Source of the DNA: Cyanophora paradoxa CCMP329
Lineage: Eukaryota; Plantae; Glaucophyta
Assembly (NCBI GenBank): GCA_004431415.1
Contig: QPMI01000701.1
Span: 1 to 64,000 of the forward strand
DNA length: 64,000 nt
Direction: 5' to 3'
A program made the translations under genes and the position numbers. Below, piece after piece: positions 14,521 through 59,778 of the stretch. How positions within the stretch are numbered: the first letter of the stretch is position 1; the number at the start of each line of letters is the position of its first letter. Under the pieces are notes generated by a model, which saw only the letters and a list, made by a program, of their open reading frames with translations, was not told the DNA's origin and ran no database searches.

Positions 14521-16876
14521 ATGGCGTTTGTAGCGGGCGCTCCGGCGTGGCCAGGGGCTTGTAGATCAACCGGTGAATCAGCTGTCCGCCGTGCGACGCG
14601 CCTCCGCTGATGCCCGCGGCAGGCAGCGCGACTGCTTCCTGCAGCATCCTGCCAGTCGAACGTGACGCCCCGATGCGCGGCAAGCGGTCAGAGAGCACTC
14701 GCAGGGCGCGTTTCGTGGCGGTCGATCATCGCGTCGCGCGGATCTTCTTCGGCCGCTCCCTCGCCGAGGCGAAGCCGCGTCCCTCGGCTGCCCCCGTCGC
14801 GTCACGGCCGGCCGAGATCGCCGGTGAGTCCGGCGCCGGGCCGCGTGCGGTCCCCGTGTCGAGCCCGTTCGAAGCAGCGTCGGGCGCGGGCCCGTCGTCG
14901 GTGGCCTTCTCGGAGCCGACGCTCGGGGGCGTGAAGCTGGTACCGGGCGAGACGGTGCTGCACTTCATCGGCATCGGCGGCATCGGCATGAGCGCCATCG
15001 CCGAGATCCTCACCCGCTTCGGGCGCGCCTGCCTCCCGCCCGGGCCCCGCGCCCCTCCCCGCGGCGGAGCTGACGCGGGGCGGGGCAGGTACAAGGTGCG
15101 GGGCAGCGACGCGGCGGAGGGGGCGAACCCGAAGCGGCTGCGGGAGCTGGGGTGCGAGGTGGAGGTGGGGCAGCGGGCGGAGAACATCACGGGGGACGTC
15201 GCCGTCGTCGTCATCTCCTCCGCCATCAAGGACGGGAACCCCGAGGCGAGCCCGCCCGCCCACGCCCCCGCCCCCGCCCCGGCACGCCTCACGCGGCGGC
15301 CCGGCAGCTCGAGGAGGCGCGGCGGCGGGGCCTGCCCGTCGTGCACCGCGCCGACGCCCTCGCCGCCGTCATGCAGGCCGGCCCCGCCCGCCCCCGGCCC
15401 CTCCCCCTCTTCGAAGGCGCTGGGCTGACGGGGGCTGGGGCGCAGGTGTGCGCGGACCCGGCGAGGGGCGGGGCGGTGGCGGTGGGGGGCACGCACGGGA
15501 AGACGACGACGACGTCGCTGATGGCCGCCCTGCTCGAGGCCGCCGGCGCCGAGCCGACCGTCGTCAACGGCGGCATCATCAACGCCTACAAGTCCAACGC
15601 CAAGGCCCGCCCCGCCCCGCCCCGCCCCGCCCCGCGGGCGGCTGGGCGGGGCTGACGCGGGGGCAGGTGGGGCGGGGGGAGTGGGTGGTGGTGGAGGCGG
15701 ACGAGTCGGACGGGACGTTCACGCGGCTGCCGGCGTCGGTGTGCGTGGTCACCAACATGGACCCGGAGCACATGGAGCACTACCTCTCGTTCGACAACGT
15801 GCGGGCCGCCTTCGGGCGCTTCGTGCGGCAGGCCCTCGCCGCCCCCAACGGGCGCGGCCTCGCCCTCCTCTGCTCCGACCACCCCGAGGTCGCCCGCCTC
15901 GCCGACGAGTGCAGCGCCGCCGCCACCGGCCGCGTCCGCCCTCCCCCCGCCCCCCCCCGCCCCGCCCCGGCGGCGCCTCGGGCGCGGTGCGCTGAGGCGG
16001 GGCAGGTGGTGACGTACGGGTTCAAGGATGGGGCGGAGGTGCGGGCGACGAACGTCCGCTTCACCCCCGACGGCGAGGCCTTCTTCGACGTCACCGCCCC
16101 GCGTCCGCCCCGCCCCGCCCCGCCCCGCCCGCCCCCTCCCGCCTCACTCCTCGGGGCGGGGCGGGCGGGGCGCAGGGGCGCGGATGGCGGGGCTGCGGCT
16201 GCGGGCGGTGGGGGAGCACAACGTGCAGAACGCCCTCTCGGCGGTGGCGCTCGCCCTGGAGCTCGGCATCCCCGAGGCGGCCCTGCGCGCCGCCCTCGCC
16301 GGCTTCGAGGGCGTCCAGCGCCGCTTCACCCTCGCCGGCCGCGTCCGCGGCGTCACGATCATCGACGACTACGGGCACCACCCCGTCGAGATCGCCGCCG
16401 TCCTCCGCGCCGCCCGCGCCGCCGTCAGCGCGGGGGCACCGGGGGCGCGGGTGGTTGCAGTGCACCAGCCGCACCGCTACACGCGCCTCTCGGACCTCTT
16501 CCACGAGTTCGCCGCCTGCTTCGCCGACGCCGACGCCCTGCTCCTGAGCCCCGTCTACCCCGCCGGCGAGGCCCCCATCCCCGTCCGCCCCGCCCGCCTC
16601 GCGCCCCGCCCCCTCGGGCGCGCGTTGACGCGGGGCAGGGGGCGACGCACGAGGCGCTGGCGGCGGCGGTGGAGGCGTCGTGCGCGGGGCCGGGGTCGGG
16701 GCGGGGCGGGTGGTGGGGACGATCGGGGCCCGGAGGAGCTGGCGGGGGCGCTGGACGCGTTGGAGCTGCGCGAGGGCGACCTCGTCGTCTGCCTCGGCGC
16801 CGGCTCCATCTCCGCCTGGGCCCGCGCCCTCCCCGCCCAGCTCTCCGCCCTCTGGGACGTGCCCCCCGCCCAGTGA
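14521..16876 (+). CDS. murC: UDP-N-acetylmuramate--L-alanine ligase, plastid-targeted
   Basis: Transit peptide MAFVAGAP... Motifs [68 protein letters not shown] and LGAGSI. Confidence 0.97.
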
Positions 16877-17825
16877 CCCGCCCCGCCAGCGACACCACAG
16901 GCCCCGCGCCCCTGCCCCGGCCCCCGCCCGCCCCTCCCGCCTCCCCGGGCCCCGCCCCCGCGTCCCGCCCGACCCCTTCCGCGGGCCTCTCTTCATGCCT
17001 TGAGACCGCGAGCGCCACCCTCAGTGTCAGGCAAACCCTCCCCAGAACCTTAATCTTTGGATATGGCGATATGTGTGTCGAACTTCGGAATGAATCTGCT
17101 AGCGCCGCCCCGTACGCGTGGCTGGCGTCGAGCTTCTGTGCCACGTTGTGCACCGGTACCCGGTGACCGTCACGGCGTGGCGGGGGACTCGGCGTCCGGT
17201 CTCAAGCCGCTGATCATGGGCTCGCCGAGTCGAGGCTACGAAGCCTCGCCAGGCCCTGAGGCTCGGGCCGGCGCCTCGGACCGGGCCGACTCAGTGAGTG
17301 GCCATTGGGCGTCTGAGGTCTACCGTAGTACGGCCCGTGGCGGCCCAGCGTCGCTCGAGCGCTAGCAGCCCGGCAGCCTGGCACTGCGGCAGACTGGCAT
17401 TTGATCATGATCATGCCATCGACTCAGCGATCATCATGGCATGTCATCATGGCATGTCATGATGATGATCACTGCAGCTGACTCGTGAGTCGTAATCATG
17501 AGAATTCGAAGCCTTCGGGTTTCATGTTCAGGGCTTCGAATTCAAACTTCCAAAGTTCAAGCCTTGAAGGCTCCGAGGCTCAGCGGCTTGAAGCTCGGAA
17601 GGCTTCTCCGAGCTTGAGGTTCCCGTCAATTCGGACTCTCAGAGTCTCGGCGTCAGCGAGGGGACTGGTTCCGAGTTCGAGGTAAATTCGACGCCGCGAC
17701 ATGCATTATGTATAATTACTAAAGTTACATTAACTAGTGGATTGGATATCGGGGTACAGCGATGGCGATGATGCGGGCAGACAATCGGGCCGATGTGCAC
17801 AAGGGGGAGAGGAGGAGGGGAGGGG

Positions 17826-17859
<34 letters not shown>

Positions 17860-17911
17860 CGGGTGCGGCGGGGCGGGGGCGGCGGGGGCCGGGGCGCGGG
17901 GCGCGACGAGG

Positions 17912-19416
17912 TCAGAGGTCGTGGCGGGCGCCGGCGACGACGGCGTAGGCGAGCATGGGGTACACGAGGTCGACGCTGTGCGGCCCGTGCACCTCCACCC
18001 CCGTCAGCACCGCGTAGTCGCACGCCCCCCGCCCCCCGCCGTCGACGCCGCGATCAGGTGCTCCAGCAGCTCGCCCTGGGCCTCGGCGGCGGCGCGGGTG
18101 ATCTCGTCGAGGGCGGGGCGGGGGCGCCGGGGGGCGGGGCCCGAGGCGCTCGAAGACGAGCTGGGCGAGCAGCGACTCCTCGACGTCCTCGAGGTCCAGC
18201 GCCGGCCGCTCCTGGCCCCGCCCCGCCCCGCCTCGGTGCCCCGCCCCGACGCCCACGCGCCGCGGGCGCGCACGTTCATGAGGCCCTGCGCGTAGCGGGC
18301 CTGGATGGCGCAGAGGGCGCCGCAGGCGTGCGAGGGGCGGCAGCGGCCGGCGCGGGTGCAGGCGCCCACGGTGCCGTCCTCGCCCACCGCGACGTGCAGG
18401 AACGCGAAGAAGACGTACCGCTCCCGCCCGTCCCCCGCCTGCGCCCCGCCCCCGCCCCTCAGCCACCGTCGGGGGGCGAGTGGAGGGCGGGGGGCGGGGG
18501 GGCGGGCCAGCGGGGAGTGCCCCTCGGCGGCGGCGAAGGCGGTGATGCCGCCGGAGAGCAGCCCGCCGATGCCCGCGAGGCCCGACAGGTCGAACTGCAA
18601 ACGCCCACGCCTCACCCCCCGCGCCCCAGGGAGGCCCGCCCCCGGGGGCCGCGGCGGGGAGGGCGCACGGCGCCGGCCCCGCCGGGGGTTGTCCACGCCT
18701 CCTCGATCTTGCGGAAGAGGGGCTGGCAGAGCTCGTCGCGGCACAGGCAGATCACGGGTATGGACGTCTGCGAGGCCCGTCGGGCGAGGCGCCGGCGCAG
18801 GGCGGGGCGCGGCGTGCAGGGCGCGGGGCGGGCGGACCTGCCTGCAGAATCCGAAGGGGGCGAGCCGACGGACCGAGTTGCGCACAAACTCGTCGCGGGT
18901 CACGCAGCCGGGGTACAGCTCCCTCACGCGCTCCTCAAACGCCCTGCTTGCACCCCGGCTCGCTCCCAGGGGGCGGGGGGCGGGGGGCGGGGGGGCAGGG
19001 GGCGGGGAGTGGGCGGCGCGCGCGCACGGGATCGTGAGCAACTGGGGGCGAACGACAGAGAGCAGATGCTGGATGGGATTCGAACTGAAGGCTCTCTTGA
19101 CGGCGCGCACCGCCGCCTCCCGCGCCTGCCCCGGCAGCTGCTCGCGCCGCTCCGGCGGAATAGCCACGCAGGCGCACGATAACTCGATCAGCGGCGCCTG
19201 GGGTCGAAGCACGGCTTCCTGGGTCCCAGCGAAGAAAGCTCTCCGTCCGCCTCGGTGCTCTAGCGAGTTCGATGCCCTGTCCGGGGAGTGGCGGCCCGGT
19301 CGCATGTGCTGCGTACGCGTACACGCTGCGCTAGTCGTGTCTGATGCACGCTGCGCTAGCGCTGAAGAGCTCCATTGCGGCGCGCTGCAGCTACAGCTCG
19401 CTGAAAAGGCTTCCAT
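17912..19416 (-). CDS. LCIB/LCIC-family (theta-type) carbonic anhydrase-like protein, paralog 1, with transit peptide
   Basis: MEAF-type presequence. Motifs LYPG, ICLCRDELCQPL, FDLSGLAG, HSP, FLHVAVGEDGTVG, HACGAL and DYAVLTGVEVHGP. Confidence 0.9.
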
Positions 19417-20284
19417 CGCCCACTCGGGCTGACGATGCGGACGCTGGCGGCGCGCACGGACGCTGGCGGCGCGCACGAGTACTTGGACGAATTCCGGAAT
19501 ACTGGGACTATTCTTGCGACGTTCTGCCGTCGTATGCGTCCCTCGTCTCTTGGACGCGCTCCTCGTCCAGGTTAGTGTGCATGTGCTGTACCCGCTTCTC
19601 CTCCCCCCCCCTACTCGGTCTGCAGCTCTGCCGGTACCCCGGAACCTTGCAAAAATTGTGACGTCGATCGCGAGTGGCTCCGATCGCGCACGATCGCGAT
19701 CGCGCGAACAATCAGCACATGCCTGACTTCTATAAAAGAAGGAATTTACAGACAATAATTATAAATTCAATTAATATTCAACGGAGATTGCGCGCACATG
19801 TATTTGCATCTGGGTACAGTCAACCCTCATCTATTATACTTACTGAAATAATATATTTATTCTGCATGTCAAATTAACAATTTGTGTGTCCAATTTTGGT
19901 GAAAAGTACCTGGTTTTATGAACAGAGCTTGTTCACGCGCCCACGGGTGGGAGAGACAGCTTGTGTCTTACCTAGCTTGCGCGTTCATCTCTTTCGCGCG
20001 CGCGCGCGGACACTAATGGATCGGAGAAGGCGCGCGCGCAAGCATGCATGCGCTACTCAGCCTACTCTCACCTGCGTGAACGTTGCTTTGTTGAGGAGCA
20101 GCGGCTGTACATGTGTCGGCGGATCAAATGCAGATATCGATCTAGAGGCCAAGGCCACCGGTACCGCAGCTTCCTCATCATGAAGGAATCAATGTCCGAG
20201 TCAGATACTATGATAGCGATCGCCGCGTCGCACGTGTCGCTTTGATATCGATACGCGCATGCGTACGTCGCATGCTAGCCAGCT

Positions 20285-20352
20285 GCAGATCTGCAGTGTT
20301 TAGAGGAGAGCAGCACAGCAGATCTGCAGTGTTTAGAGGAGAGCAGCACAGC
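20285..20352. repeat. Exact 33-bp tandem duplication upstream of the F-box/LRR gene
   Basis: gcagatctgcagtgtttagaggagagcagcaca occurs twice in a row; a (CAA)n run follows near 20372-20391. Confidence 0.9.
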
Positions 20353-20471
20353 TGACCGCATTCCTTTCCCTCAACAACAACAACAACAACAAACCCGCAG
20401 CAGAATTTGTGTCCGATACGCGATCAGCGAGTCGTCGCCCACGCGCCGAAGTCAGCTGCGAGGATTGCGCT

Positions 20472-23351
20472 ATGGCGGCGATCGCGGGTTGCCCGTACGC
20501 CTTCTCTTCGTGGGACCAGGTCCGAACCGCACTCGCTCGCGCCCGCCTGCGCGCTGGGCGCCCCGGCCCGCGCGCGATGGCCACCGACCGATCTGCGTCG
20601 CGTGCACGTGCGCAGGGGCTCTTCGAATTCTTCACGGGGCGCGGCAGCCGCGCGAAGAAGGGGCCGGCGCGGCCGTGCGTGCGCGCCGGCGTCGTGAGGA
20701 GGAAGCGCGCGCGCTCGACGACCTCGCAGCCCTACCCGCCCTCGGCCCTCTGCGCGTGCGCATGCGGCTGCCCCTCCGACCCTCCTCCCTCCCCGGCCCA
20801 GCCGCCGACGCCGCGGAAGGTCGCCGGCAGGGTACCGGTGCGGGGAGGGGGCGGGCGGGCGCGGGGCCCGGGCGGCGCTGCCGGAGCTGCCCGACGAGCT
20901 GCTGGCGGAGATCGTCGGGCGCCTCGCGCTGCGCGACCTCGCCGCCCTCGCCGCCACCTGCCGCCCTCTCCGCGCGGCCGCCGCCGCCGCCCTGCCCCTC
21001 GTCCGCGTCCTCGACCTCTCCGCCTGGGCCCCCGGCCACGAGGTCCGCCCTCCCCCGTCGCGATGGCGAGCCGGCGCCCCTCCCCTCGCGCGAGGGTACC
21101 GGTGCGAGCGCCGGTCTCCCCGGGCAGAAGCTGGCGGGGCTGCTGGGGCGCGCTGCGGGGGCGCGCGAGGTGCGGGTGGACTGCTGGAACGTGTACCGCG
21201 ACGCCTGGCTCGCCCGCCTGCCCCGCCCCCTCGAGCGCCTCGAGCTCCGCAACGCCAACTTCCTCAGCCCCGCCGGCTGCGCCCTCGTCGCCGCCGCCGC
21301 CACGCCCCTCCGCGCCCTCGTCGTCACCACCTCCTACCGCCACGACCTCGGGGAGGCCCAGTACCAGGTCTCTCCTCCAGCTCGAGCTTCGATTCCCTCA
21401 GCTGTGCGGGGGAGTGACCACGAGGGGTGCGCGGGGCGGCAGGACCTCGGGCTCGGGGTGGTGCTGCGCGCGGCGGCCTCGACGCTGGAGGAGCTCTGCC
21501 TGGACGTCCCCGACGAGCGCGGGGCGCTCCGCTGGGACCTCGCCCCCCTGCGCCTGCCCCGCCTCCGCCGCCTGGCGCTGCGCTCGGCGGCCCCCGTGGA
21601 CCTCCTCCAGCGCCTCCCCGCCACCCTCCGCTCCCTCTCCGTCTCCGCCGCCGCCTCCCCCCTCTGCGTCCTCGGTGCCCCGCCCCCGCCCCCGCCCCTC
21701 CCCGCCCATCTGACCCGGGGGCAGGGGACGGGTACGTGGAGGCGGTGTGCGCGGCGTGCCCGCAGCTGGAGGAGCTGGAGCTGGGGGGGATGGCGTGGGC
21801 GGGGCGGGGGGCGCCGGCGGGGGGCCTCGCGGGGCTCGCGGCGCTCGTCGGGCCGCCCCCGCTCGCCCTCGTCTCCGACCGCTCCTTCGCCGCCCTCGCC
21901 GTCCGCCCCGCACCCCGTCGCGCGTCATCGCAGCTCATCTCACGCGGCGTGGCGGGCAGCGGCTGCGCTCGCTGCGGGTGCTGCGGCTGGAGCTGGTGGA
22001 GGGCGGGTGGCCCTCGTCGGCGTCGGACGCCGGCGTCGCGCTGCTCGCCGCCTCGTCCCGCTCCCTCGTGCGCCTCGGCCTCTGCGGGATGCGCGGCGTG
22101 GGGGACGCGGCCCTGCTCGCCCTCGCCGCCTCGTGCGGGGCGAGCCTCGAGGAGCTGGACCTCTCGCGCACCGCCGCCTCGGACGCCGGCCTCGCCGCCC
22201 TCGCCCGCGCCTGCCCCCGCCTCGCCCGCCTCGCCCTCTCGTGCGGCCCCCACCCCGCCGCCCCCGCCCCCCGAGCCCCCGTCTTAGCCCGCGCCCGCAG
22301 GCAGTGCGAGCGGGTGAGGGACGGGGCGTGGGGCGGGTGGCAGCCCTCGCGGGCCCCGGGTGCGCCCCGGCGCCCCTCCCCGCGGTCGCCCGCTCAGCCG
22401 CGGCGCGCGCAGCTGGAGTCGCTCGAGCTCTTCGGCTGCGGCGGGGTCGGCGACGCGGCCCTCTGCGCCCTCGCGACGCACTGCACCCGCCTGCGCCTGC
22501 TCGACGCCCGCGGCTGCGCCGCCACCGACCTCGGCGTCGCCATGTCCGCCCCCTCCCGCCTCGGCCCCCGCCCGCTGGCGCCACGGCTCACGGGGCGGGG
22601 CGCGCAGGCTGCTCGCCTCGCCGGCGGCGGGCACGCTGGAGGTCCTCCGTCTCGGCAAGGCCTACAGCAGGCAGGCCCAGGCCAAGGCCGTCTTCCCGCC
22701 CCCCGCCCGCTGGCCCCCCGGACCCCGCGAGGAGGGCCCGCGCCCCTTCCCCCCGGCCTTGCCCTCCGTCGTGGTGGTGCCGGGGGGGACGTACCCCCCG
22801 GGGCTGCCCCTCACGGACGCCTCGCTGGCGCTGATGGCGGCCCCGGGCCGCTGCGCGCGCCTGCGCGAGCTCGTCCTCGTCGACGCCGCCGTCACCGACT
22901 GGTTCCTCGAGCGCGCCGCCCGCTCCCTCGGCGCCCTACAGATCCTCCAACTCGTCGTCCGCCCCCGCCCCCGCCCCCTCCCGCACGCCTCGCCTCACGC
23001 CCCCCGCAGAAGTGCGAGCGGGTGACGGGGGCGGCGCTGCGGCTGCTGGCGGCGGGGGCGACGCGGGGGTCGCTGCGGGAGGTGCACCTGCGGGACAGCG
23101 GGGCGCGCGTCGGGCGGCGCGAGGTGGAGGCCCTGCGGGGCATGCGCGCCCTGCGGCAGGCCCTGCTGCCCTGCCGCGAGACCACCGCCATCCCCGCCCT
23201 CCACGCCTCCAACCGCCTCCTCGACGTCTGCTTCTACTCCCTGCCCCCGCCCCTGCCCCTCCTCCCGCCCCTCCCCCGCGCCCCCTCCGCCTGGCGCCGC
23301 CCCGCGGCCGGCCCCTCCTCCCCGCTCCCGCCCCGCCCCTTCTCCGCTTGA
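20472..23351 (+). CDS. F-box / leucine-rich repeat protein (FBXL-like)
   Basis: F-box ELPDELLAEIVGRLALRDLAALAATCRPLR. Cys-containing LRRs such as LESLELFGCGGVGDAALCALATHCTRLRLLDARGC. Confidence 0.85.
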
Positions 23352-24062
23352 GCCGAGCAGGTGCCGCCGCGAGCGGCCCCACGGGCCGTTGCGCGCTGCC
23401 CTACGGCAGCTTCAGAGCCTGGCCCCGCTGTTAACGATGCCGCATATACATGCATATGCCTTTTTCCTTGCAATTGTCTGTATTTTTGTGGACCGGACCG
23501 CTCTCTAGTTTCAAGTTTCTTATTTCCGAGTTCGGGCCCCGGGGCCGCCTCCGCCGCCGCTGATAACGAGTTCTTCGAGTTCAGCGATCGGCGTGTATAA
23601 CTAGTACTATAATTTCATCCTAGTCGCGCGTACGTTTCTGCTGGGTTCCACGGATCGCAAGGCCAGCCATAGCTAGAGCTAGTAAGCATATATAGGAAGC
23701 ATTGCACGCTAGACCTGCTTCGTAGATTGTACACGTTGATATCTGCATCACGCTTCTCATATCGCTATCATAGTATACGTATCCTCATACCGTCGCGTAC
23801 TGACTCAATACTGAGTTACCGATCGGCGAGAGATGCGATGCGCGATGGCCCAGCGCTAGCCGCGGCCTCGCTGGCCATGGGGCGGGGAAGGTCGAATGAT
23901 CGACACGAGCGGCGAGCCCTTCGGAGTGGCGCTGGCCCATCGGATCAGCCTGGCAGCCTGGCAGCCGCTGAGCGCTTCGGCGCGGGGGGCGGGGGCAGAC
24001 GGCTCGGGGCGGCGGGGGCCGGCTTGGTGCCTCACGAGCGGTGAGTGGCCGGGAGCAGGAAG

Positions 24063-26428: not shown

Positions 26429-26563
26429 AAGCTCGCCCGCCTGACGCCCAATGAGCTCAGGCCAGCAGATGCGGGGGGATACCCTCGCGCAGCTGCAGTC
26501 CTCCATACGAGTGCAGCGCGGATCCCGGAGCGGTTGCTGATTCTACAACATTCGTCAGAAGCG

Positions 26564-28004
26564 ATGCGCTGGGGCGTAGTGCTGGTCCTGGGCGCTGCAG
26601 CGGCCGGCCTGGCCGTGTACGCCGCCCGCCGGCCTGGCCGTGTACGCCGCCCGCAAGCCCGTAGCAAGCGCAGGGCGAAGAAGCAGCCACTTGCGCGCCC
26701 GATCGACCGCCTGGTGGCGCTGCAACCGCCGCCGCCGTCTAACATAGACGAGGACGCCGCATCACTCCCGGCGCCGACGCGTACGGCAGAAGAAAGAAGC
26801 GCCCTCACTCAACGGCCGACCGAAGAATTCGACAGCCCGACGAGCGAGGGCGAGGATGGATCCGCGTGGGGTTCCGACGACGAGCGCATGTACGGCACGC
26901 CACAGACCGGGCCGCCGAAGCCCACCGCCCTCGGCCTCCCGGCCGAGCTGTGGTGCGCATCCCCGACCGATCCCTCGCCCCTGCTGGAGCCGACTCCGGG
27001 CCCCCATTGTCCCGCAGGTTCAAGATTCTGGAGGGCCTGGACGCGAGGTCGGCGGTGCGGGTGCGGCTCGTGTCGAGGCAGCTGAGCGAGCTCTTCGCGC
27101 CGCCGGAGGGCTCGCTCTCCGGGCTGGCGCCCCGCGACTGGGCGGCGCTCTTCGGGGCGGTGGAGGCGGTGCCGGGGCCCGTGTGGGAGGCGAAGGCCGC
27201 CGACATGCTGAACGAGATCTACGAGAGCGACGAGAACGACGAGGGCCTCGGGCGCCTCGCCGTCGAGCTGCGCCAGGCGCCCAGCCGCCAGGCGCGCCCC
27301 CGCTTCCTAAACGCCTTCCTGGCGAGCGTGTACGGGCGCTGCAAGCCCTGGTGCGCCCGGCGAGGGCAGCGGCCGCGCTCCCCGCGGGGCGCCCTCGTGA
27401 CGGGGGCCGGGGCGCGGGGCGGGCGGGCAGGTTCGCGTTCGCGTGCCTGCAGCACGTGGACCCCGGGCTGCCCTCGGAGGCGCGCTTCGGGGCCTGGCTC
27501 CTCGCCGTCTACCAGGAGCTCCTCGTCCGCCGCCAGCTCGACCTCCGCACCCCCCGCGTCGAGCTCGCCATCGACGTCCGCCCCCGCGCCCCCCGCAAGC
27601 CGCCCCCCCACAGCCTGCCGCCCGCCCTCTGCCCCGCCCCTGACCGCGGGGCGGGGCGTGGCGGGGCAGCCGCGGCTCTGGTGGGGGGCGAGCTTCGTCA
27701 GCAAGGCGCGGCGGGGCCGGCTGGCGCTGACGGACCCGCTCTGGTGGGACTGGCCGGCCTGCCCCGAGGCCATCGTGGAGCAGTCCGTGCGCGCCCTCGA
27801 GCTCTGCCGCGACGAGTACGCCGCTGCTTCCCCGCCCCTCCCGGTGCGCCCCCCCGCCCCGCCCCGAGCCCAAGGCGCCGGCCGACGCCGCGGCAGGTGT
27901 GGGTCGTCATCCGGAGCCGCTGCGAGGCGACGCCGCCGGAGGAGTTCGTGGCGCCCCTCGTGCGCGCCCTCAAGGCCCGCGCCTTCCCCGTCCTCGTCGA
28001 GTAG
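26564..28004 (+). CDS. F-box protein with N-terminal membrane anchor
   Basis: MRWGVVLVLGAAAAGLAVYAARR followed by a basic run. F-box LGLPAELW|FKILEGLDARSAVRVRLVSRQL. Confidence 0.7.
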
Positions 28005-28084
28005 ACCGAGCCCTAGCCCCGCCCCGCCTCTCCCCGCGGTGTCCGCTCTCCTCTTCCTCTCCTCCGATTCGGTGCATGTGAGAT

Positions 28085-29589
28085 TTACACGGCGGCGCGG
28101 GCGCTGCCGGCGGTGGTGGGGCGGGAAGCGCGGTGCCCCGCGCTGCCGGCGCTGCCGACGCGGCCGGCGACGTACTGGAGGTAGGGCTCGGCGCCCGGCG
28201 CCGGGCCCACCGCCCCCGCGCTCGAGATCGACGCCGCGCTCAGCGGCCGCACGATCGGCATCGTCACCTGAACCGGCGGCAGCGTCGCGGCGGCCGCCCG
28301 CGGCGGCGTCGAGGCCCGCGGCGGGGAGGATGCCCGCGGGGGAGGGCGGCGGCGGCCGGGGCGGGTGCGGGTGCGGGTGCGGGGGCAGGTGCAGGTGCGG
28401 AGGGAGGGGCGGGAGGGCGGCGGGGGCGTGGCAGGGGCTGGGGTAAAGGGCGGGGGCAGGGGGAAGTGGTCGAAGGGGTCGAGGGAGGCGGAGGGGCGGA
28501 GGGCGGGGCGCGGGGGGCGAGAGGTCGGAGGAGGAGGGGCCGCGGGCGAAGCGCAGCTCCTGCGGGGCTGACGCGGAGCGCGCCAGCTCCTGCGCCTCCC
28601 GCGCCGGGCTCCCCGCGCTGGACGCCGCGCCCGAGCCCGGGCCGGGGGCCGGGGGCGGGGCCTCCCAGGTCTTGAGCGGGGTGAGCTTCCAGCCGGTCAT
28701 CCCGGCGTGGGCGATGTAGGGGATCTCGCTGTCGGGGAACATCTCGCTCATCGGGGTCGCCAGGGCGGCCCCGCCCGGCGCGATGCCCCGCCGCCGCGGC
28801 TTGTTGCTCTTCACCGTCGGCAGCGCCTTCACGTGCATGTACCCGTGGATGATCCACACGTTCCGCTCCTCGTCCCGCGGCGTCAGGTTCCGGTTCGAGC
28901 GCGGGTCTGCCCACGCGCCCCGGCCCCGCTCAGCTCGGGGCGGCGCGCCGGGGGCGGGGGGAAGGGGCGGGGACCGTCGATCCAGCCGCTGCGGAGGGTG
29001 CGGCCGTAGGCAGTGCTTCCGACGGAGAGGGGGCGGCCGTCGGGCCCGCGCGCCTGCCGCTCGTGCAGCGAGCCCTTCGACGTCGACGCCCGCGTCAGCT
29101 GCGCGGCCACGTCCACTGCGCCCCGCACGTGAGGCGGCGCCGGCCGAGGCGCCGCGGGCCCGGCGCGCGGGCGGGGCGGGGCGCACGGGGCATGCTGCTG
29201 CCGGCGAGCCGCTTGGGCACCTCGACGCTCGGGACGTGGCGCCGGCGCGAGAGGATGCCGAGATCCCCGTGCGTCACGCCGAAGTACTTCACCGCGTACG
29301 AGGGCTCCCGCTGCGGCGACTGCGCCCGCGCGGGGCTCGCCGCCTGCGTCCCGCCGAACTGACTCCGCGCGCCCGTCCTGCTGCTCTCGTCCAGCGTGCG
29401 CTCGTGCAGGCTGGAGGTGCTCGCCGCATGACCCGTCACGTCGAGGCCCTGCGCCTTGCCCGAGCCCCGCGATGCGCCGCGGCCGCGTAAGGGCCCGGAA
29501 GCGGTCCCCCAGCTATCGTGCTTCTGCGGCGCTCGGCGATCAGACTCTGGAAACGGCATTCTCTGCTCTACTCGTGCGCGCTGTCCCAT
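28085..29589 (-). CDS. Hypothetical protein
   Basis: Coding-like exons (YAVKYFGVTHGDLGILSRR, NVWIIHGYMHVKALPTVK, IPYIAHAGMTGWKLTPLKTW) flanked by typical introns. No domain recognised. Confidence 0.5.
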
Positions 29590-29919
29590 AGCTCAGCTAA
29601 CTTGATGTGCAGCGTAAAATAGAATAGGTTGCGAAGCCGGCGGTTGTTTGGTCAAGAGGCAGCAATGGGGCTCTCTGACAAGCATATGGAGGGCGAGAAC
29701 TGGTCCTGGCGCGGCATAGATGGAGAGAGCGCCGCCGGGATGCGTGCCGCCCAAACGACCACCAAGCAGCTGCTGGGTCCGAAGCAGCTATCTGTCTAGA
29801 AGATGGAGGATGCGTACAGCCGTAATAGATGCTAGCTACGCCCCAGCAGCGCGCGGACCTTCATTTTGTTGTGAGACTGTACCCCGCAGGCGAGACTCAA
29901 AAGCTCAACACCAGCCAGG

Positions 29920-31753
29920 ATGGCCTCGTTCGTGAGCAGCACAGGTTCGTCACGTCGTAACAACACTTTGGGCGGTGTTGCACGCCCGTGCCAGAGTTGA
30001 TTGGTTTGGCGCCAGGCTCGCTTCCGGCTTCTGCTAGCCGGCCGGTCGTTGCCTCGGCTTCTTGCACTCCGGCTGGACGCACGGCTGTCGGGCTGGCCAA
30101 GCGCTCCGCCTTCACTGGTTCCCGCGTACATGCCAGTGGCTCGGCCAGCTTTATCGCCCGCCCCGTTCGCTCGACAGTCGCCTCTCCGGCCGTCCGTCGC
30201 TCTTTTGATGTGACGGAAAGCTCGCCGCTGGTCCTCGCCTCGGCCGGTGAGTCGAGTGCGCGCGCGCGTAACGCTGGGCCGCCGCGACTCAACGGTCCCC
30301 TCCCTGCGCCGGGCGGGCCGCCGCAGACGGAAAATCGATCGTCATCGCGGGCGGTGGCACTGGCGGGCACGTGCTGCCGGCGCTGGCCATGGCGGACGCG
30401 TTCAAGAAGGCGCTGGGCCCGTCGACGGAGATCCTCTTCGTGGGGACGGAGCGCGGCATCGAGAAGACGCTCGTGCCGAAGCGGAACTACGAGATCGAGC
30501 TCATCCCGGGCGCCCCGATCGTCACCGGCGGCTCCATCTTCACCCGCCTCGCCAAGCTCTTCGCCGGCCTCTTCGCCCTCGTGCCCGCCCCGCGTCCCGC
30601 CCGCCCTCCGCCGAGCCCAGCCGGGGCCGCGCAGATCGCGGGGGTGATCGCGGCGTACAAGCTGCTGAAGAAGCGGAAGCCGAACCTGGTGCTGGGCGTC
30701 GGGGGCTACGCCTCGGCGGCGGCGGTGATCGCGGCGAAGATCCTGGGCATCCGCACGGCCCTGCACGAGTCGAACGCGGTGCCGGGCCTCACGAACAAGC
30801 TCCTCGGCTCCGCCGTCGACCGCGTCTACGTCGGCTTCGACGCCGCAAAGGGCGCCTTCCCCGCCGCCAAGACCGTCGTCACGGGCAACCCCGTGCGGCC
30901 CGAGATCGCCGCCACGTGGGAGGTCCGGCGCAAGGCCATGGAGGAGCAGGGCGCCAAGGCGCGGCTCCCGGCGCACGTGCTGGTGGTGGGGGGCTCGCAG
31001 GGGAGCCAGTTCCTGAATGAGCGCGTCCCCGCCCTCGTCGAGAAGGTCAAGCTCGGCATCCGCTACCGCGCCGCCCGCCGCGGCCACCTCCTCCCCGTCC
31101 GCCCCGCCCCCCCGCCCCCGCCACCGCGCCCCGCCGACGGAGCGGGGCGGGCAGGACCCGATCGTGAAGGTGCTGCACCAGGCCGGCCGGCGCGAGGGCG
31201 AGGCCGCCGCCACCGCCGCCGCCTACGCCGCCATCCCCTCCGGGCCCGCCCCGCCCCCGCCCGCCGCTCCCTCGCGCCCCCCCCGCCGGGCTGAGGGGGC
31301 GGGGCAGGGTGGAGGCGGAGGTGCGGGAGTTCGTGGACGACATGGACGCGAAGTACACGTGGGCGGACGTCGTCGTCTCCCGCTCGGGCGCCTCGACCAT
31401 CTCCGAGCTCGCCGCCGCCGGCGTCCCCTCCTTCCTCGTCCCCTACCCCGCCGCCGCCGGCGACCACCAGGCCCTCAACGCCGCCTGGCTCTCCGACAAG
31501 GGCGCCGCCTCCTGGATGCGCCAGGGCTCCTGGGACGACGACGAGGCCGCCGAGCGGTGCCCCCCCCGCCCCCGCGCCGCCCCGCCCCGCCCGGGCTGAG
31601 GTGCGGGGCGCGGGGCAGGCTGGTGGAGATGCTGTACGGGAGCGCGGGGACGCGGGAGAAGCTGGTGGCGGTGGCGGAGGCGGCGCACGCGGTGGCGCAC
31701 GAGGACGGCGCCGCCGCCGTCGTCCGCGACGCCGCCGCCCTCCTCGCCCCTGA
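29920..31753 (+). CDS. murG: Undecaprenyl-PP-MurNAc-pentapeptide N-acetylglucosaminyltransferase, plastid-targeted
   Basis: Transit peptide MASFVSST|ELIGLA... Motifs IAGGGTGGHVLPA, GVGGYAS, HESNAVPGLTN, TGNPVR, GGSQGS, SRSGASTISE, LVPYP and DHQALNA. The TGA at about 31751 needs a 1-nt homopolymer correction; otherwise the frame runs on to 32285. Confidence 0.96.
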
Positions 31754-32430
31754 GCCCGCCCCCGCGCCCCCTCCGACGTCCATCCCCGCCCCCCGCCGCG
31801 CGCCCCTGGACCTCGCGCCCGCGCTCTCCCCGGGGCGGTTGCTTTTTGCTCACACGCATAATTGTTTGGCCCGCTCTTTCGAATTCTTTTGCAAATTCAT
31901 TTCCTTCAATTTTAGATTCTTTCCATGGAGCCTCGGAGGCCTGCAGCCTGCAGCTGCGGGTGCTGCCTGCATGCGCAGTGCCAGCAGCAGTGGGCCTGCA
32001 TGCGCAGTGCCAGCAGCAGTGGGTGCCAGCAGCCGCAGTGCCTGCAGTACCGCGCGCATGAGAGCTAGATCGCATGCGGCGCCGGGGGTGAATGCGAACT
32101 TTGCGAATTCGAAGCTCCGCAATTTCTTATCCATGGCCGGCCGGGGGTACAGACTCCTGGGGAAGGGAAGGGCGGCAGCGGCCCATCATCCAGGCTGCAG
32201 CAGCAGCCGGACACGGAGAACGACGCAGCTGCAGGGATCATCAGTCGACTGGGCCGCGTCACATTCGATATTGACGCATTGTTAGCTAGGACGGCCCGGC
32301 GCGTCACATTCGGAAACGGCGTCGCCTGCATGTTCCGAGACGTTTTTGACAGCTTGTACGCGTAATCGATCGAGCTGGTAGTCAGGCAGCAGCGTACGCG
32401 TCGCCGTGCATAAGAATTAGCGTCTCGGCC

Positions 32431-35400
32431 ATGGTGATCTTCGGCGACCACGCTGAGGAGCAATATGGGCATTGCTTGCCCATGGAAGGGCACATCAAAA
32501 CCTTCCTCAGTGCGTCCTACGGTCTCCGCCTTATCTTCGGTCAAGCTTGCGAACGAACCGGCCCTTTTAACGACTCTTAGTCGCGCTCCCCGCTTCCTCG
32601 CGCCAACTGGTCCCCCGCTCTGTCCGTCTGATCGGTTTGTGCAGTCTGGTCGGATCTTGTCATCGCGATCAGCTACGCGTGGATCCCTGTGATGCTGGCC
32701 CTCTTCCTCCGCAAGCGCTGGATCGACTTGTGCGGGCCGCCCCCTCGCCGGCGCCGCGCCGTGCCGAGGCGGCTCGCGCAGCCACCTGCGGACGCGCAGC
32801 ATCATCGCGCTCTTCGTGGCCTTCATCATGGCCTGCGGCTCCACGCACCTCGTCTCGGTCTTCATCGTGCGCGCCCCGCCGCCCCGCCCTGCTGCCAGGG
32901 GAAGAAGGGCGACGGGGGCGGGGCGGGGCGGCGGCGGCAGATGACGCACGGGCAGACGGCGGATATAATGCGGCTCTCGGCGGCGCTCAAGTTCATCACG
33001 GCCGTCGTGAGCGCGGCCACGGCGGCCTTGATGTTCTGGGTGCGCCTCGCTCTCCACCCGCCCTCCCGCCCCCGGCCGGCCCGTGACGCCCCCCGAGGTG
33101 ATGCCGGCCGTGCTGCACATCCCAATCGAGCTCGAGCGCGAGAAGGTGCGAGCCGCGCCGCCCGCCTCGGGGGCCCGGCCTCCCGCCGCCTCGAGCGGGG
33201 GCGGCAGCTGCACCGGGCGGAGCTGGAGCGGGAGATCACGAGCCGGCGGGCGGCGGAGGGGGCGCTGCAGAAGCAGGTGAAGCACGCGGCGGTGCTGCGG
33301 CACATCACCGACGGCGTCCGCTCCTCCCTCGACGCCTCCCGCATCTTCGACGTCGCCGCCACCGAGGCCCGCCCCCTCTCCCGCCCCGCCCCCCCTCCCC
33401 GCCCCTGCTCTTGACCCGCCGGGCAGATCGGGCGGGCCTTCGGGGCGGACATGTGCGCCATCTGGGTCTGCGGCGGGGCGGCCGGGGTGGACCCCGAGGC
33501 GGGGGGGACCCCCGCCCCCACGCCGCCCTCGTCGGCCGCCGCCCTCGGGGCGGCCCCGGCGCGCGCTCCGGGGCCACCCCTCCGCTGCGTCGCCGTCTTC
33601 AACGGCACCGTCACCCGCCCCGGCACGCCCTCTGACGGCCCCAGCGCCGCCCGCCGCTCCTACACCGCCCGCCCTTCGTCCCCCGCCCCGCCTCCGTCCC
33701 CTCTCTCCTCTCCGCCGGGACCCCGGCCGGCGCCCGGAGCCTCAGCATCTCGGCGGCGGCGAACCGGCTGGCGGCGGGGCTGCGCGTGGAGGCGGCAGGC
33801 CCGCCCGGCGGCATCGGCCTCTCCGAGGGCGGCTTCCGGCGCGTGGGCGCCCTCCGCGGCTACGCGCCCCTGGCGAGCGGCGAGGAGGAGGCCGGGGCCG
33901 GCCCCGCGCCGCTGAACGCGGGGGCGGCGGGGGAGGTGGAGGGGGCGGGGGGTCGACGCGGAGCGGGTCGGGGTGGGTGGAGGAGAGGGAGGGTGCGGGG
34001 GAGGCGGCGGGCCCGCGGCTGCTGCTGCCGGGGGCCCGCGTCGAGGAGTTCCCCTCATCCGCCGCGCCCTCGCCTCGGACGCCATCCTCCAGGCCCGCCC
34101 CCCGCGCCCCCCGCCCCGCCCCGCCCCGCCCACCCCCCGCCCCCGCCCCGCAGGTGCCCGACGTGCGGCAGGACCCCGACCACGCCTGCTACGCCTTCTT
34201 CGAGGTCCCCGCCCCCGCGCCTCCCTGCCCCCCGGCCCCCCTGGAGCGGGCGGGGCGTGGCGCAGGAGATGCGGGCGGGGAGCGCGTTCGTGGTGCGGAC
34301 GAGCTTCGCGGGGGAGGCGAACGGGGTGATCTTCCTGGCGCGCCGCGGGCCCTCGCCGCGCCTCGCCGGCGACGAGGCCGAGCTCCTCGCCGCCGTCGCC
34401 AAGCAGGTCGGCATCGCCTCGAGCAGGGTGCGCCCCCGCCCCGCCGCCCCCCGCGCCGCCGGCCTCGGCGCGCCGCCGGGGCCGACGGGGGCGGGGCGCA
34501 GCGCGGATGCTGGCGAAGGAGCGGCGGGTGAACGCGGCGCTGGAGCGCGCCCGGGCCGCCGCCGAGGAGGTGCCGCCCCCCGCCCCCGCCCCTCACTCAC
34601 TTTCATTGAGATCCTTCAACTCTATGCTCAATTTCTGCAGACAAACAGCGCCAAGTCCCGCTTCATCGGTCCGCCTGCCCCCCGCCCCGCCGCCCCGGCC
34701 CCCTCCCTCCCACCCCGCCGCCCCTCACGCGAGCCGGCGCCCCCGCGGGGAAAAAAAAGCTTCAATGTCGCACGAGATCAGGACGCCGCTGAACGCGGTG
34801 ATCGGGTTCACGTCGGTGCTGCTGCAGTACGGCGAGTCCGGCAGCGCCGCCTACCGCCTCAGCCCCGAGCAGGCCGACATGCTCGAGACGTCCGCCCCGC
34901 CCCGCCCCGCCCTGCCCCGCCCCACGCGCCAGGCCCGCAGGGGGCTGAGTGGGCGGGCGGCAGGATCCGGAGCTCGGGGGAGACGCTCCTGACGGTCATC
35001 AACGGTGCGCACGCCGGCCCCGCCCCTGCTCTCCTCGCTAACTGCGACCGCAGACATCCTGGTCCGCACGCCGGCGGGGGGGCGGGGCCGGGGCCCTCGT
35101 CCCCGCGGGCGTGCTCAGGAGGGGCCTGGGCGGGGCGCAGGACTTCTCGAAGCTGGAGGCGCGGCGGGTGGAGTTCGAGGAGCGCGCCTTCTCCCTCCCC
35201 ACCATCATCGAGGAGTGCCTCGAGATCATCGTGCGCACAGCCGCCCGCCCCCTGCGCGATGGCGCCCGCGTAGCCTCGCCGCTGCGTTGGGCGGCGGGGC
35301 GGGGGCCTCACGGGCGGGGGCCTGGGCAGGCGACGGAGGCGGGGCGGAAGGGCCTCTCGCTGGCGTGGGCGGTGGAGGAGGAGGTGCCGGCGCTGGTGGT

Positions 35401-37802
35401 CGGCGACCCCACCCGCCTCAAGCAGATCCTCCTCGTGCGCCCCCGCACCCCCCGGCCCCGCCCCCGCACCCCGCCCCCGAACTCGCCCCGCCGCGGGCGC
35501 AGAACTTGTTGTCGAATGCGGCGAAATTCACGGCCAAGGGGGGGATCACGCTCCGGTGCGAGCTGGCGCCCGAGCCCCAAGGAGGCGGGGGCGGAGAGGA
35601 GCCCGAGGGGCCCCACGTGGCGACGCCCCCGCCCCTGCTCGGCGCGCCCCTCGGCCCCGACGACCTCCAGCTGCTCTTCGTGCGCCCCGCCGCCCCGCCC
35701 CGCCCCGCCCCTCCGAGCCAGCGGGGCAGCACGTCACGGACTCGGGGATCGGGGTTTCGCCGGAGGGGATGGAGCGCCTCTTCATCCCCTTCTCCCAGGT
35801 CGACGCCTCCATCACCCGGTGCCCCCGCCCCGAGGCCGCCCCCGCTGCCGGCCCCCCCCTCCCCCTCCTCCAGCCTGACGGGCGCGCGGCGGGCAGGCAA
35901 TTCGGGGGCACGGGCCTGGGCCTAGCGATCAGCCGGAAGCTGTGCGAGGGGATGCGGGGCCGCATCTGGGCGACGAGCCGGGCCGGGGAGGGCACGACCT
36001 TCTCCTTCTACATCGTCGTGCAGCGCGCCCCGGCGCCCTTGTCCCGCCCGCACCCCTCCTCCCGCCGCGCCTCCCTCGCCCCCGTGGCGCCGGCGGGGAC
36101 GAGCCCGAGCTCGAGCCGGGCCCCCTCGGGCGAGCTCTCCGGCGCCTCCAGCCGGGGCACGAGCGAGGGCGGCGAGGGGGACGAGGAGGCGGCGCGCGGG
36201 CGGCGGGTGGCGGTGGCGAGCGCGTGCGCGGTGGAGCGGCGCTTCTTCGAGGTGGAGCTGGGGCGGGCGGGGGCGGCGTGCTTCGCGGCGGCGAGCCTCG
36301 AGGAGGCGCTCGCGGCCGCCGCGGGGCCCGTCGACCTCGTCGTCCTCGACTCCCCGGGGCCCCCGAGGCCGCCGCCCTCGCCCAGCTCCCCGTCGCCCCC
36401 CCGCCCTCATCCTGCAGCCCCCCGGCCTCCCCCGCCCCTCCAAGTCGGCCGCCGGCCCCGCCGCCCTCTCCCGCCCGCTGCGGCGGGCGGCCCTCTTCCG
36501 GGCCATCAAGCGGGCGCTGCTGGCGCCGGAGCCCGGGGCGGGGATGCCGCGGAGCCAGCGCTCGCACTCGGCCCCCAACGCCCTCGACCCCGCCCTCGCC
36601 CTCGCCCGCCCCGGCCCCGGCTCCCTCGAGCACTCCCCGCCCCCTCCCGCCCCCTCCCGCGGCAGCTTCGACCGCGAGGAGGCCGCCCGCGTGGGGCAGG
36701 GCGGGCGGGGAGCCCCTTGGCGGGGGCGGGCGCCTCCGCGGGCCCCTCCTCCCCGCCATCGTCGCCCTCCCGACGTCGGCGACGCCGCCGCTGCGGCCGT
36801 CCCCCGCCCCGCCCCGCTGCCCCTCCACGACCACTTGCGCCCCCAGCCCGTCCTGCCCGCCCCGCCCCCGCCTCCCGCGGCGGCGGCGCCGGTCCTGGAG
36901 CTGGAGCCTGCGGAGGGGGGGGAGGAGGGAGAGGAGGAGGGGGCGGGGCCGCCGCCGCGCATCCTGGTGGCGGAGGACAACCTGGTGAACCAGAAGGTGG
37001 TGAGCCGCCTCCTCGCGGTCGTGCACGGCCTCCAGACCCTCCCCGGCCTCGTCTGCGTCCCCAACGGTGCGCCCGCCAGCGAGTGAGGGCCCCGCTCGGG
37101 GGGCCCCGCCGGGCGCGCCCCCGCGTGCGGCTCGGTGAGTGGGGTCGGGGCGGGGCCAGGGCTGGAGGCGGTGCGGGCGGTGAGCGGGGCGGGGCGGGGC
37201 GCTTCGACGTAGTCTTCATGGACCTCTCCATGCCGGTCATGTCCGTGCCCGCCGCCCCCCAGCTCGCCCGGGCCCGCCCCTCTCACCCCCGCCTCCCCCC
37301 CCCCCCCCCCCCCCCTTCCCCCCCGCAGGGACGGCCTCGCCGCCTCTGCCCGCATCCGCGCCGAGGTGCCCCCAGACCAGCAGCCGCACATCATCGCCCT
37401 CACGTGCCCCCGCCCCCGCCCTCCCCCCCGCCCCCGCCCGCCTGCCGGCCGGCGCTGAGGCTTGCGCTGGGCAGGGCGAACGTGAGCGAGGAGGACCGGC
37501 GGGCGTGCCTGGCGGCGGGCATGGACGGCTTCCTGCGCAAGCCCCTCCGCCTCGAGGAGCTCCGCGCCGCCCTCGACGCCTTCCACGCCGCCCGCCGCCC
37601 CGCACCCGGCCCACCGCCGCCCGCGCCTTCGCCCCCGCCCGCCCCCGCCGCCCCTGACCCCCTGCCCCGCCGCCTCCCGTCGGCTACCTCCTCTCCGGGG
37701 GCTTCCCAGCCCCTCTGTCCTCCACGCTCCACGCTCACTGCTCTCCCCAGCTTTTCATTTGTTATCCTCACGTTGTGTCCATCAGCTTCTTATCTATACT
37801 AG
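32431..37802 (+). CDS. Ethylene-receptor-like hybrid histidine kinase (ethylene-binding domain, GAF, HisKA, HATPase, pseudo-REC, REC)
   Basis: YGHCL..I|WSDLVIAISYAWIP; FVAFIMACGSTHL; LKFITAVVSAATA; GAF-like region; SMSHEIRTPLNAVIG; NLLSNAAKFT; DSGIG; GGTGLGLAIS; AEDNLVNQKV; FMDLSMPVM|DG; FLRKP. The true stop may lie near 37657. Confidence 0.92.
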
Positions 37803-52720: not shown

Positions 52721-52871
52721 TCTGCGTGAAGGCCCCCTGCGGCCACGGCCCGGCCTGCAGCTGCGCCGCGCGCGTCCAGAACAAGGCGTTCTTCGGCGAT
52801 GCCGTCGCCAAGAAGGCCGCCCGCGCCGCCCCCTCCACCTCCTTCTCGGTCTTCGCCTCCGCCGAGAAGGT

Positions 52872-52879: not shown

Positions 52880-52911
<32 letters not shown>

Positions 52912-58651: not shown

Positions 58652-59409
58652 TCATTGACCATGGCACCGTACGCTTGGCACCCGTTGACCGGGACCCTGC
58701 AGCTGGTGTAAGGAATTCGAACTCAGGAACTGATTTGAAAAACTTTTTTGGGGTTCAACGGTTATGCGCACTGCGGCATGCGTGATCATGACCGTCGGAC
58801 AATTCAAGTGGCTTCATGATCAAGGCTTGGGGCCGGGCACCACTGGACGAAGTTGGAGCGCTGGCACTGCCGCAGTGCGCATGCGGCACTGCAGCAGTAC
58901 TCGTGCGCCCAAGACTCTCACTGAGTCAGGCTCTCAGAGTCTGCTGCTGAGACCGTCGGACTCTGAGACTCTGAGTTTTCAAGTTTCACGAGTCCGACCG
59001 TAGGACGGTCATGATCACTGAGTCATGCCATGATGGCTTATATATGAGGGCCATCAATGGGCCAAACGCGAAAAGTCAACTCCGAGAGCTCGAGACTCGG
59101 AAGTGACGCTTGGATTGCGGAGGTTCTTATAACCGCCGCAACAGCTGTGGGGGTACCCCTTCCGAGGCTGGCGATCGCGGCGATCACGAGCCGATCGCGA
59201 CCCTGGCGATCGCGATTTTCTCCCGATCGCGACCCTTTTCGATCGCGATTTCGAGATCGGGGGCATTTCTGCGATCGCGAGAAAGGAAAAATCGGAAAAG
59301 GCCGAAAAGTGCGTTTTTCACGCGTGAAATCGACCCAAAACGAGGGTTCGAATCCCGGGGCCGGATTTGGACTTGGGTAAAATCTCGAGTCAAAATGGGA
59401 GAAAAATGC

Positions 59410-59481
59410 GACTTGGGACTTGGGACTTGGGACTTGGGACTTGGGACTTGGGACTTGGGACTTGGGACTTGGGACTTGGGA
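59410..59481. repeat. (GGGACTT)10 telomere-like heptamer array; degenerate copies near 59367 and 61502-61526
   Basis: Direct reading of the sequence. Confidence 0.95.
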
Positions 59482-59538
59482 AGAGTCGGAGTCAGAGTCT
59501 GGACTCAAAAGCGGGGAAATTTTCGGAAGGGGAGAAAA

Positions 59539-59778
59539 ATGGCAGACGAGCCCTATTACGATTTCCCCTTTGAGTTGAATATGGCATTCGAGAGGTTGCG
59601 CGAGTTCTGGCGTTGGCACATCACAGGACATGACATCCCCGGAATAAGACCAGTGCCCAACACACAGGGCGTCCTCGAAATTGTCCGTCAATATCCGCGT
59701 CGATTCAATGAATGGATTGAGTTCCACGCGACGAACCGTTTCCAAAGTCTCCCGAGGCCATACGCGAAAATTTCGTGA
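59539..59778 (+). CDS. Small intronless hypothetical protein (79 aa) in the island
   Basis: aaaaATG context; MADEPYYDFPFELNMAFERLREFWRWH... has normal protein-like composition. Confidence 0.4.
   Translation: MADEPYYDFPFELNMAFERLREFWRWHITGHDIPGIRPVPNTQGVLEIVRQYPRRFNEWIEFHATNRFQSLPRPYAKIS

Follow-up and report, generated by a model that had tools for sequence, protein, structure and literature searches.

Alternating G-rich and C-rich blocks follow the intron layout of genes in a GC-rich Cyanophora paradoxa contig

In a 64,000-nucleotide stretch of the glaucophyte Cyanophora paradoxa CCMP329 (assembly GCA_004431415.1, contig QPMI01000701.1, positions 1 to 64,000; the whole stretch is called the window below), the sense strand of the genes alternates between G-rich and C-rich blocks, and the question raised by this locus is what sets the phase of the alternation and what maintains it. 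The window has a G+C content of 72%, with third codon positions at ∼100% G+C in coding stretches. It holds intron-rich nuclear genes for bacterial-type enzymes, with short introns and dense gene packing, in agreement with the published description of the C. paradoxa genome (67.6% GC, 9.2 introns per gene, and a mean intron length of 86 bp; PMC6704402). Our attention centers on the gene-dense region at 14900..37700, which carries a Mur ligase (murC), paralogue A of an LCIB-type gene, murG, and a hybrid histidine kinase, among others; the skew wave itself runs on through genic DNA over the whole window (∼1–58 kb). Domain searches, run exon by exon, gave Pfam matches on single exons to the N- and C-terminal domains of MurG, the M and C domains of Mur ligases, an LCIB carbonic-anhydrase domain, and a histidine-kinase ATPase.

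A 25-nt trace of the G–C skew over murG (29850..31833, + strand, Glyco_transf_28 N- and C-terminal domains), the transcript of which is covered by spliced RNA contigs, displays a clean alternation of positive and negative blocks. Across the window, the autocorrelation of G–C is positive up to ∼60 nt and reaches its minimum at ∼110 nt, while the Welch power is 5–8 times that of locally shuffled sequence at periods of 160–500 bp (z = 20–40) and falls off steeply under ∼150 bp. This excess forms a broad plateau over 160–500 bp, in which no sharp spectral peak was found. C-to-G switches in genic DNA, identified on the cumulative skew, are spaced with a mode of 175–200 bp and a range of 100–375 bp; the median acceptor-to-acceptor distance is 187 bp, and the RNA-confirmed units measure 153, 209, 227, 239, and 311 bp. 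The wave is a quasi-periodic band, not a sharp line. With that proviso, the switch spacing bears out the first-pass annotation of this DNA, which had described a skew oscillation with a period of 150–250 bp, a fair figure for the full cycle. The variance of the standardized 60-nt skew is 4.3 in genic windows as compared with 1.0–1.4 in non-genic windows below 75% GC, and the block structure is limited to genic, very GC-rich DNA. A lower-GC island at 58500..64000 lacks the wave, as had been claimed for 59–63 kb: the Welch spectrum has no excess at 150–350 bp between 58.5 and 64 kb. A two-state hidden Markov model (HMM) on the raw skew was also tried and dropped, being too noisy and finding many blocks in shuffled sequences too; it was replaced by the spectral analysis and by prominence-based switch calling.

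Introns were confirmed by placing contigs from three RNA data sets on positions 27001–33000, with one DNA data set as contrast. The RNA contigs skip 12 intervals of 52–94 nt (27–33 kb), across all of which the DNA data set is continuous, and the borders of these 12 introns are GT-AG in 11 cases and GC-AG in one. A wider sample was obtained with a small ad hoc dynamic-programming gene-finder, and all models beyond the 12 RNA-confirmed introns are predictions. Its skew-aware version yielded 126 introns (modal length 61–62 nt) and 159 exons. The skew has predictive value for splice sites: the skew-aware intron model recovered 10/10 confirmed introns exactly in a leave-one-out setting, as against 7/10 with a flat model, which misplaced 3/10 confirmed donors. 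Since the skew-aware model puts C-rich stretches into introns, it is conservative for the exon-end statistics given below. A 7-state HMM and the flat-intron gene-finders were dropped, as they absorbed C-rich intron heads into exons and mis-set donors.

Within exons, the wave is written in the last letter of the codons. At four-fold degenerate sites of the RNA-confirmed internal exons, we counted 57 G to 12 C in the first ≤60 nt and 3 G to 70 C in the last ≤60 nt (p = 8e-24); in all modelled internal exons of at least 130 nt, the G fraction is 0.77 over the first 60 nt and 0.16 over the last 60 nt (p = 2e-90). The polarity is present in 8/8 four-fold codon families. These counts agree with the earlier proposal that the skew drives synonymous codon choice and with its expectation that third positions would turn from G to C according to the distance from the splice sites. 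The murG exon put forward as an example, at about 31309–31556, is RNA-confirmed as 31308..31556 (+) and reads 8 G to 0 C at its start and 0 G to 9 C at its end. Genes on the minus strand were said to behave alike in sense orientation, and they do: the RNA-confirmed exon 28975–29115, between introns 28907–28974 and 29116–29186 (28907..29186, − strand), has 12 G to 2 C at its start and 0 G to 12 C at its end. Segmentation of the four-fold sites finds a single G-to-C switch in 76 of the 104 exons shorter than 240 nt and a reversed one in 1, and the exonic skew reaches 60–90 nt into the exon.

The polarity is not confined to synonymous positions. The share of Gly is 12.6% at exon starts and 6.3% at exon ends, that of Pro 4.5% and 7.1%, respectively, and second codon positions drift along exons too. 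The shift of A versus T between exon start and end is not significant (p = 0.22), so the exon polarity is one of G versus C and not of purine versus pyrimidine in general. Moreover, exonic four-fold sites are skewed to 0.83–0.96, as compared with 0.65–0.70 for the adjoining intron bases; an exonic skew that exceeds that of the less constrained intron is not predicted by a purely regional mutation bias.

The wave does not stop at the exon borders. In a meta-profile built from 117 modelled and 10 RNA-confirmed introns, the C-skewed half begins at −50 nt relative to the donor and lasts until ∼20 nt short of the 3′ splice site, where the G-skewed half takes over and persists to ∼+65 nt in the exon. 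Introns are C-rich over their first ∼70% and G-rich over their last ∼20 nt, and the C-to-G switch sits at the branch point, not at the intron center. The confirmed introns of coding regions combine weak donors (GTGCGC, GTCCGC, or GCCCGC), a C-rich body, and a G-rich tail ending in GCAG, with a branch motif of the CTGAG/CTGAC type whose A lies a median of 17 nt from the intron 3′ end. Four RNA-confirmed introns of murG, all on the + strand, illustrate this arrangement: 30581..30634 (54 nt, with a C-rich head), 31097..31154 (58 nt, GTCCGCCCC...GGGGCGGGCAG), 31244..31307 (64 nt, GC-AG, with a CTGAG branch motif and a G-rich tail), and 31557..31618 (62 nt, with the same motif and a G-rich tail). 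The first-pass annotation had stated that such introns carry no polypyrimidine tract. This is correct for the segment between branch point and acceptor, from which the tract is absent, but not for the segment upstream of the branch point, where a C-rich pyrimidine tract, of nearly pure C, does exist. Its placement of introns at the C-to-G switches is confirmed: 74% of the strong C-to-G switch points in genic DNA lie in or beside introns, against 40% expected, and only 15% of the G-to-C switches do so.

Two further properties of these introns were recorded. GC donors make up 45 of the 126 modelled donors, a share perhaps inflated by the model, and the GC-AG type is RNA-confirmed once (31244–31307), which suggests that GC donors are unusually common in the window. 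The G-rich intron tail taken together with the exon start matches the canonical four-run G-quadruplex motif in 30/114 introns, e.g. 27351–27430 and 27576–27669, and 59/114 have a C-rich donor region that fits the complementary C-run motif.

Long exons pass through the cycle more than once, with two or more cycles in 5/5 internal exons of at least 400 nt. The murG and murC examples from which it had been argued that two cycles can be completed with no intron both segment as G-C-G-C. In the former, a single RNA-confirmed exon of 462 nt (30635..31096, +) over which the RNA contigs are contiguous throughout, the switches fall at +152, +326, and +389, with an internal, intron-less C-to-G switch at ∼30900–30960; the latter is a modelled Mur-ligase exon of 407 nt (16176..16582, +) with its internal C-to-G switch near 16432. 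In the interiors of exons of at least 300 nt, trimmed by 75 nt per end, the autocorrelation is +0.29 at lags of 1–5 codons versus 0.065 in shuffled controls. Another kind of rhythm is seen in exons 50252–51060 and 39763–40295 (−), where tandem 7-codon repeats give a regular GGGGGGc or GGGGccc third-position pattern; it belongs to repetitive protein segments and is distinct from the skew wave.

Homologous sequences that differ in their introns bear on whether the wave follows the introns or the introns were placed on the wave. The LCIB-type paralogue A (17915..18599, − strand) has introns at 18212–18273 and 18061–18135, with G-ending codons right after each, and paralogue B (47662..48086, − strand) has a single 425-nt exon over the region that the two introns of A split. 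The first intron of A is real, because the protein alignment continues unbroken over that junction. Just downstream of the second intron, the four-fold codons of A read 10 G to 0 C, as compared with 1 G to 8 C at the homologous codons of B; past the first intron, the endings are G G G G in A and C C T in B. Conversely, near the donor of the exon of A, its codons have turned to C, whereas their homologues in B, far from donors, are still G. The same ancestral codons thus end differently according to the present intron layout. Over 17915–18599 and 47662–49152, the LCIB copies differ in intron number and one shared intron is shifted by ∼8 codons, a sign that introns of this family were gained, lost, or displaced by sliding in recent times.

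The second comparison lies within a repeat-domain gene (41967–45378, − strand). Its repeat units 44553–44692 and 42829–42987 have an intron after 46 and 52 codons, respectively. Their sister, repeat unit 2 (43272..43594, − strand), is a 323-nt exon with no intron, and it undergoes a C-to-G switch near 43431, at codons 47–53, within ∼5 codons of the intron positions of its sisters. In the simplest reading of this unit, an intron was lost and its polarity stayed behind as a relic. Together, the two comparisons, of one case each, say that the wave follows the introns, rather than that introns were placed on an existing wave, and they offer an ordinary account of one or more of the additional cycles seen in long exons. 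The earlier view, in which introns merely sit on an independent wave, survives in that introns do lie at switches; the supposed independence is weakened by a phase that follows the introns in paralogues.

What kind of signal would behave in this way? The reading that we favor, while giving it slightly less than an even chance, is that of a composition code locked to the splice architecture, one that would be read from the pre-mRNA and preserved through selection at synonymous positions. Each coding-region intron is the center of a two-part composition domain of ∼180–190 nt on the sense strand. The C-rich (pyrimidine) half, of ∼95 nt, comprises the last ∼50 nt of the upstream exon and continues across a weak donor (GTSCSC or GCCCGC) through the body of the intron; the G-rich half, of ∼85 nt, takes in the branch point (CTGAG/CTGAC, ∼17 nt before the AG), the 3′ splice site, and the first 60–70 nt of the next exon. 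Because third positions are almost always G or C, exons carry their part of the domain by means of G-ending and then C-ending synonymous codons, supplemented, less markedly, by a surplus of Gly close to the exon start and of Pro close to its end. Factors that bind C tracts and G tracts would read the domain on single-stranded pre-mRNA for exon/intron definition, in a setting where extreme GC would have erased the usual A/U-based splice signals. The additional cycles of long exons would then be, most simply, relics or equivalents of intron positions. Slightly more tentatively, the pattern could be a previously undescribed splicing code of Cyanophora, in which a bipolar domain of ∼190 nt, with a C tract around the donor and a G tract that starts at the branch point and enters the next exon, would mark exon and intron borders more than the classical motifs and a pyrimidine tract do; the domain would then fix most synonymous choices and shift the usage of Gly and Pro. 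Or else, the wave could be a DNA-encoded code that positions one nucleosome per exon.

Several observations weigh against a code locked to splicing. The two 5′-UTR introns of murG, 29945..30015 (+, GT..AG) and 30247..30326 (+, donor GTGAGT), both RNA-confirmed, are spliced with a lower GC content, more ordinary donors, a pyrimidine-rich 3′ part, and no C-then-G polarity, so the pattern is not needed for splicing as such. Terminal exons have a C-rich end despite having no donor, and their C tract continues into the 3′ UTR, as in murG, where the last exon is G-rich and then C-rich and the C-rich tract extends beyond the stop codon; the C half is thus no donor signal in the strict sense. The repeated cycles in all internal exons of at least 400 nt, like the block structure found far from splice sites, could instead point to a length scale of ∼190 bp that is inherent in the wave. 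The symmetry of the pattern under reverse complementation is what a dyad-symmetric process acting at the DNA level would also predict. The comparisons between paralogues and between repeat units amount to one case each, and most gene models of the window are predictions. Finally, the upkeep by selection and the protein readers are parts of the account that we infer.

The intrinsic scale and the symmetry are what an alternative at the level of chromatin would explain, although we regard it as unlikely. Here, one nucleosome would be strongly positioned per cycle, its dyad lying on the G-to-C switch, while the C-to-G switch and the homopolymer-like intron would occupy the linker. The pattern would have arisen from a dyad-symmetric asymmetry of mutation or repair, or as a selected positioning code, and linkers would be where introns were inserted or kept. 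In other small algae, Micromonas and Aureococcus, methylation phased to linkers and introners targeted to them have reportedly been found (Huff & Zilberman 2014; Huff et al. 2016). Both the most common distance between C-to-G switches and the median distance between acceptors have a suitable length, skew power is cut off steeply under ∼150 bp, and the cycle restarts in long exons that have no intron. However, the spectrum has no line, and the spread of the switch spacing (100–375 bp) and of the RNA-confirmed units (153–311 bp) is wide. The G block that follows the acceptor is approximately fixed in length and the remainder stretches with the length of the exon; homologous codons differ in phase between paralogues with different introns; and four-fold sites are more skewed than intron sites. 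Nanopore methylation data with a linker-associated periodicity of 6mA have been published for C. paradoxa CCAP 981/1 (PMC12695648).

Still less probable, in our estimation, is a functionless strand asymmetry of mutation, tied to transcription or to co-transcriptional splicing, for instance through R-loops or a single-strand exposure that differs around the branch point and the 3′ splice site. Such a process would account for a wave that is limited to transcribed, extremely GC-rich gene bodies and extends into the 3′ UTR, and for the persistence of the skew at a probable former intron site, like a slowly decaying neutral relic. The GC skew also correlates with the AT skew in 100-nt windows (r = 0.35). 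Yet we know of no mutational process whose sign is reversed mid-exon and at branch points, and neither the stronger bias of exonic four-fold sites relative to neighboring intron bases nor the shifts in Gly and Pro usage would be expected from it.

The first-pass annotation had suggested that C/G stems pair the ends of introns and replace the pyrimidine tract. Pairing of C and G arms at intron or exon ends, or the converse, in which the blocks keep the splice sites unpaired, is very improbable in the light of the folding calculations. Several confirmed introns do fold end to end in their minimum free energy (MFE) structure, e.g. GUGCGCCCCGC...GCGGGGCGCAG, and C arms and G arms are in general very highly complementary to one another. 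Nevertheless, the MFE of the 10 confirmed introns relative to 100 mononucleotide shuffles gives z values from −2.6 to +2.3, with a mean of ∼−0.6, that is, no excess stability. The pairing energy of a 5′ arm is −28.1 kcal/mol with the 3′ arm of the same intron, which is no better than the −30.4 kcal/mol with those of other introns, and no cognate advantage was detected for the pairing of exon start with exon end or across introns. The predicted unpaired probability is 0.30 at the donor versus 0.31 in G/C-permuted controls (0.27 versus 0.29 in a wider context) and 0.30 versus 0.29 in the branch/acceptor region. The blocks thus appear neither to form specific stems nor to open splice sites, at least thermodynamically, and the stem hypothesis was abandoned. 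A family of introner-type transposons, the C-rich and G-rich terminal inverted repeats of which would give introns their polarity, is just as improbable: intron lengths are indeed tightly clustered (mode 61–62 nt) and intron ends resemble inverted repeats, but among 91 introns of this single 64-kb window no near-identical families were found, the mean best normalized alignment score is 0.45 versus 0.39 after column permutation (top pair 0.64), and an introner origin would not explain why the polarity is stronger at the four-fold sites of exons.

The remaining RNA-confirmed introns belong to genes on either side of murG. A neighboring gene (27351..27896, +) contributes introns 27351–27430, 27576–27669, and 27844–27896 with the two exons between them, and the hybrid histidine-kinase gene contributes intron 32730..32781 (+). 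In murG itself, the contigs of 3/3 RNA data sets show one additional C behind position 31746, within a run of C a few nucleotides upstream of the TGA; the 2012 DNA contigs lack it. The assembly could have a homopolymer error here, the strains could differ, or the additional C could matter for the reading frame at the MurG C terminus. A 170-nt inverted duplication, 95% complementary (48907–49076 and 52721–52890, 3.6 kb apart), copies the 5′ exon of an LCIB-type gene (−) onto the + strand, where it starts another modelled gene. Over the whole window and on both strands, the antisense strand of nearly every gene carries long stop-free ORFs. The genome paper reported 3,510 “bidirectional ORFs” that were puzzling and untranscribed (PMC6704402), and the combination of ∼100% GC at third positions with a reverse-complement-symmetric skew may be their source.

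Full-text literature searches returned no description of a G-to-C polarity of exons, in Cyanophora or elsewhere, and the words skew and hairpin do not occur in the Cyanophora genome paper (PMC6704402). The same paper describes the gene models of this species as problematic for HMM predictors; a skew-aware intron model should improve annotation, as 3/10 donor calls were corrected in the window. If the pattern is a functional signal for splicing or chromatin, it would be the strongest known second code on codons, setting most G-versus-C synonymous choices and shifting amino-acid usage, and it would show how the spliceosome copes where extreme GC removes A/U-based signals. Relic-like switches in long exons could, in addition, mark lost introns and so provide a new handle on intron gain and loss.

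How does this pattern compare with known systems? Short introns of the fungal type (∼60 nt) have a pyrimidine-rich stretch between the donor and the branch point. The introns of Cyanophora are likewise short, with their pyrimidine stretch upstream of the branch point, and intron definition is likely; what sets them apart is a tract that consists almost wholly of C, a G-rich stretch between the branch point and the 3′ splice site, and domains that reach far into the flanking exons. With the nucleosome-linked gene architecture of small algae, the window shares a unit of ∼190 bp, exon-sized units that are separated by elements of intron size, and an origin in an alga with a GC-rich genome, but it displays neither a sharp period nor introner families, and the phase follows the introns between paralogues. 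Unlike the nonconventional and intermediate introns of euglenids, those of Cyanophora have no specific end-pairing stem, and their borders are the canonical GT-AG (11) or GC-AG (1).

In mammals, G exceeds C and T exceeds A over whole introns, with the opposite bias over whole exons, an asymmetry that is absent from intron-less genes (Zhang, Li, Krainer & Zhang 2008; Touchon et al. 2004, as outlined in the review PMC10030826). There too, according to that review, a sense-strand skew is tied to splicing architecture and has been proposed to aid the discrimination of exons from introns (PMC10030826). A uniform sign of this mammalian type is not found here, the net GC skew being +0.009 in exons and −0.124 in introns: compared with the asymmetry outlined there, exons and introns of Cyanophora are each bipolar, with switches mid-exon and at the branch point. 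The closest resemblance in kind may be sought in Ectocarpus and human, where, in the study by Wu et al. (2013, PMC3787667), skews of codons and amino acids at exon ends are ascribed to exonic splicing enhancers, are purine-rich, and are largely the same at both ends. As in those organisms, the use of codons and amino acids by Cyanophora varies with the distance from the exon–intron junction, a dependence which that study attributes to pre-mRNA recognition signals overlapping the coding sequence (PMC3787667). Set against the skews described there, the two ends of a Cyanophora exon have opposite preferences, G and then C, and the skew is very large, crosses the splice sites into the intron, and recurs within long exons.

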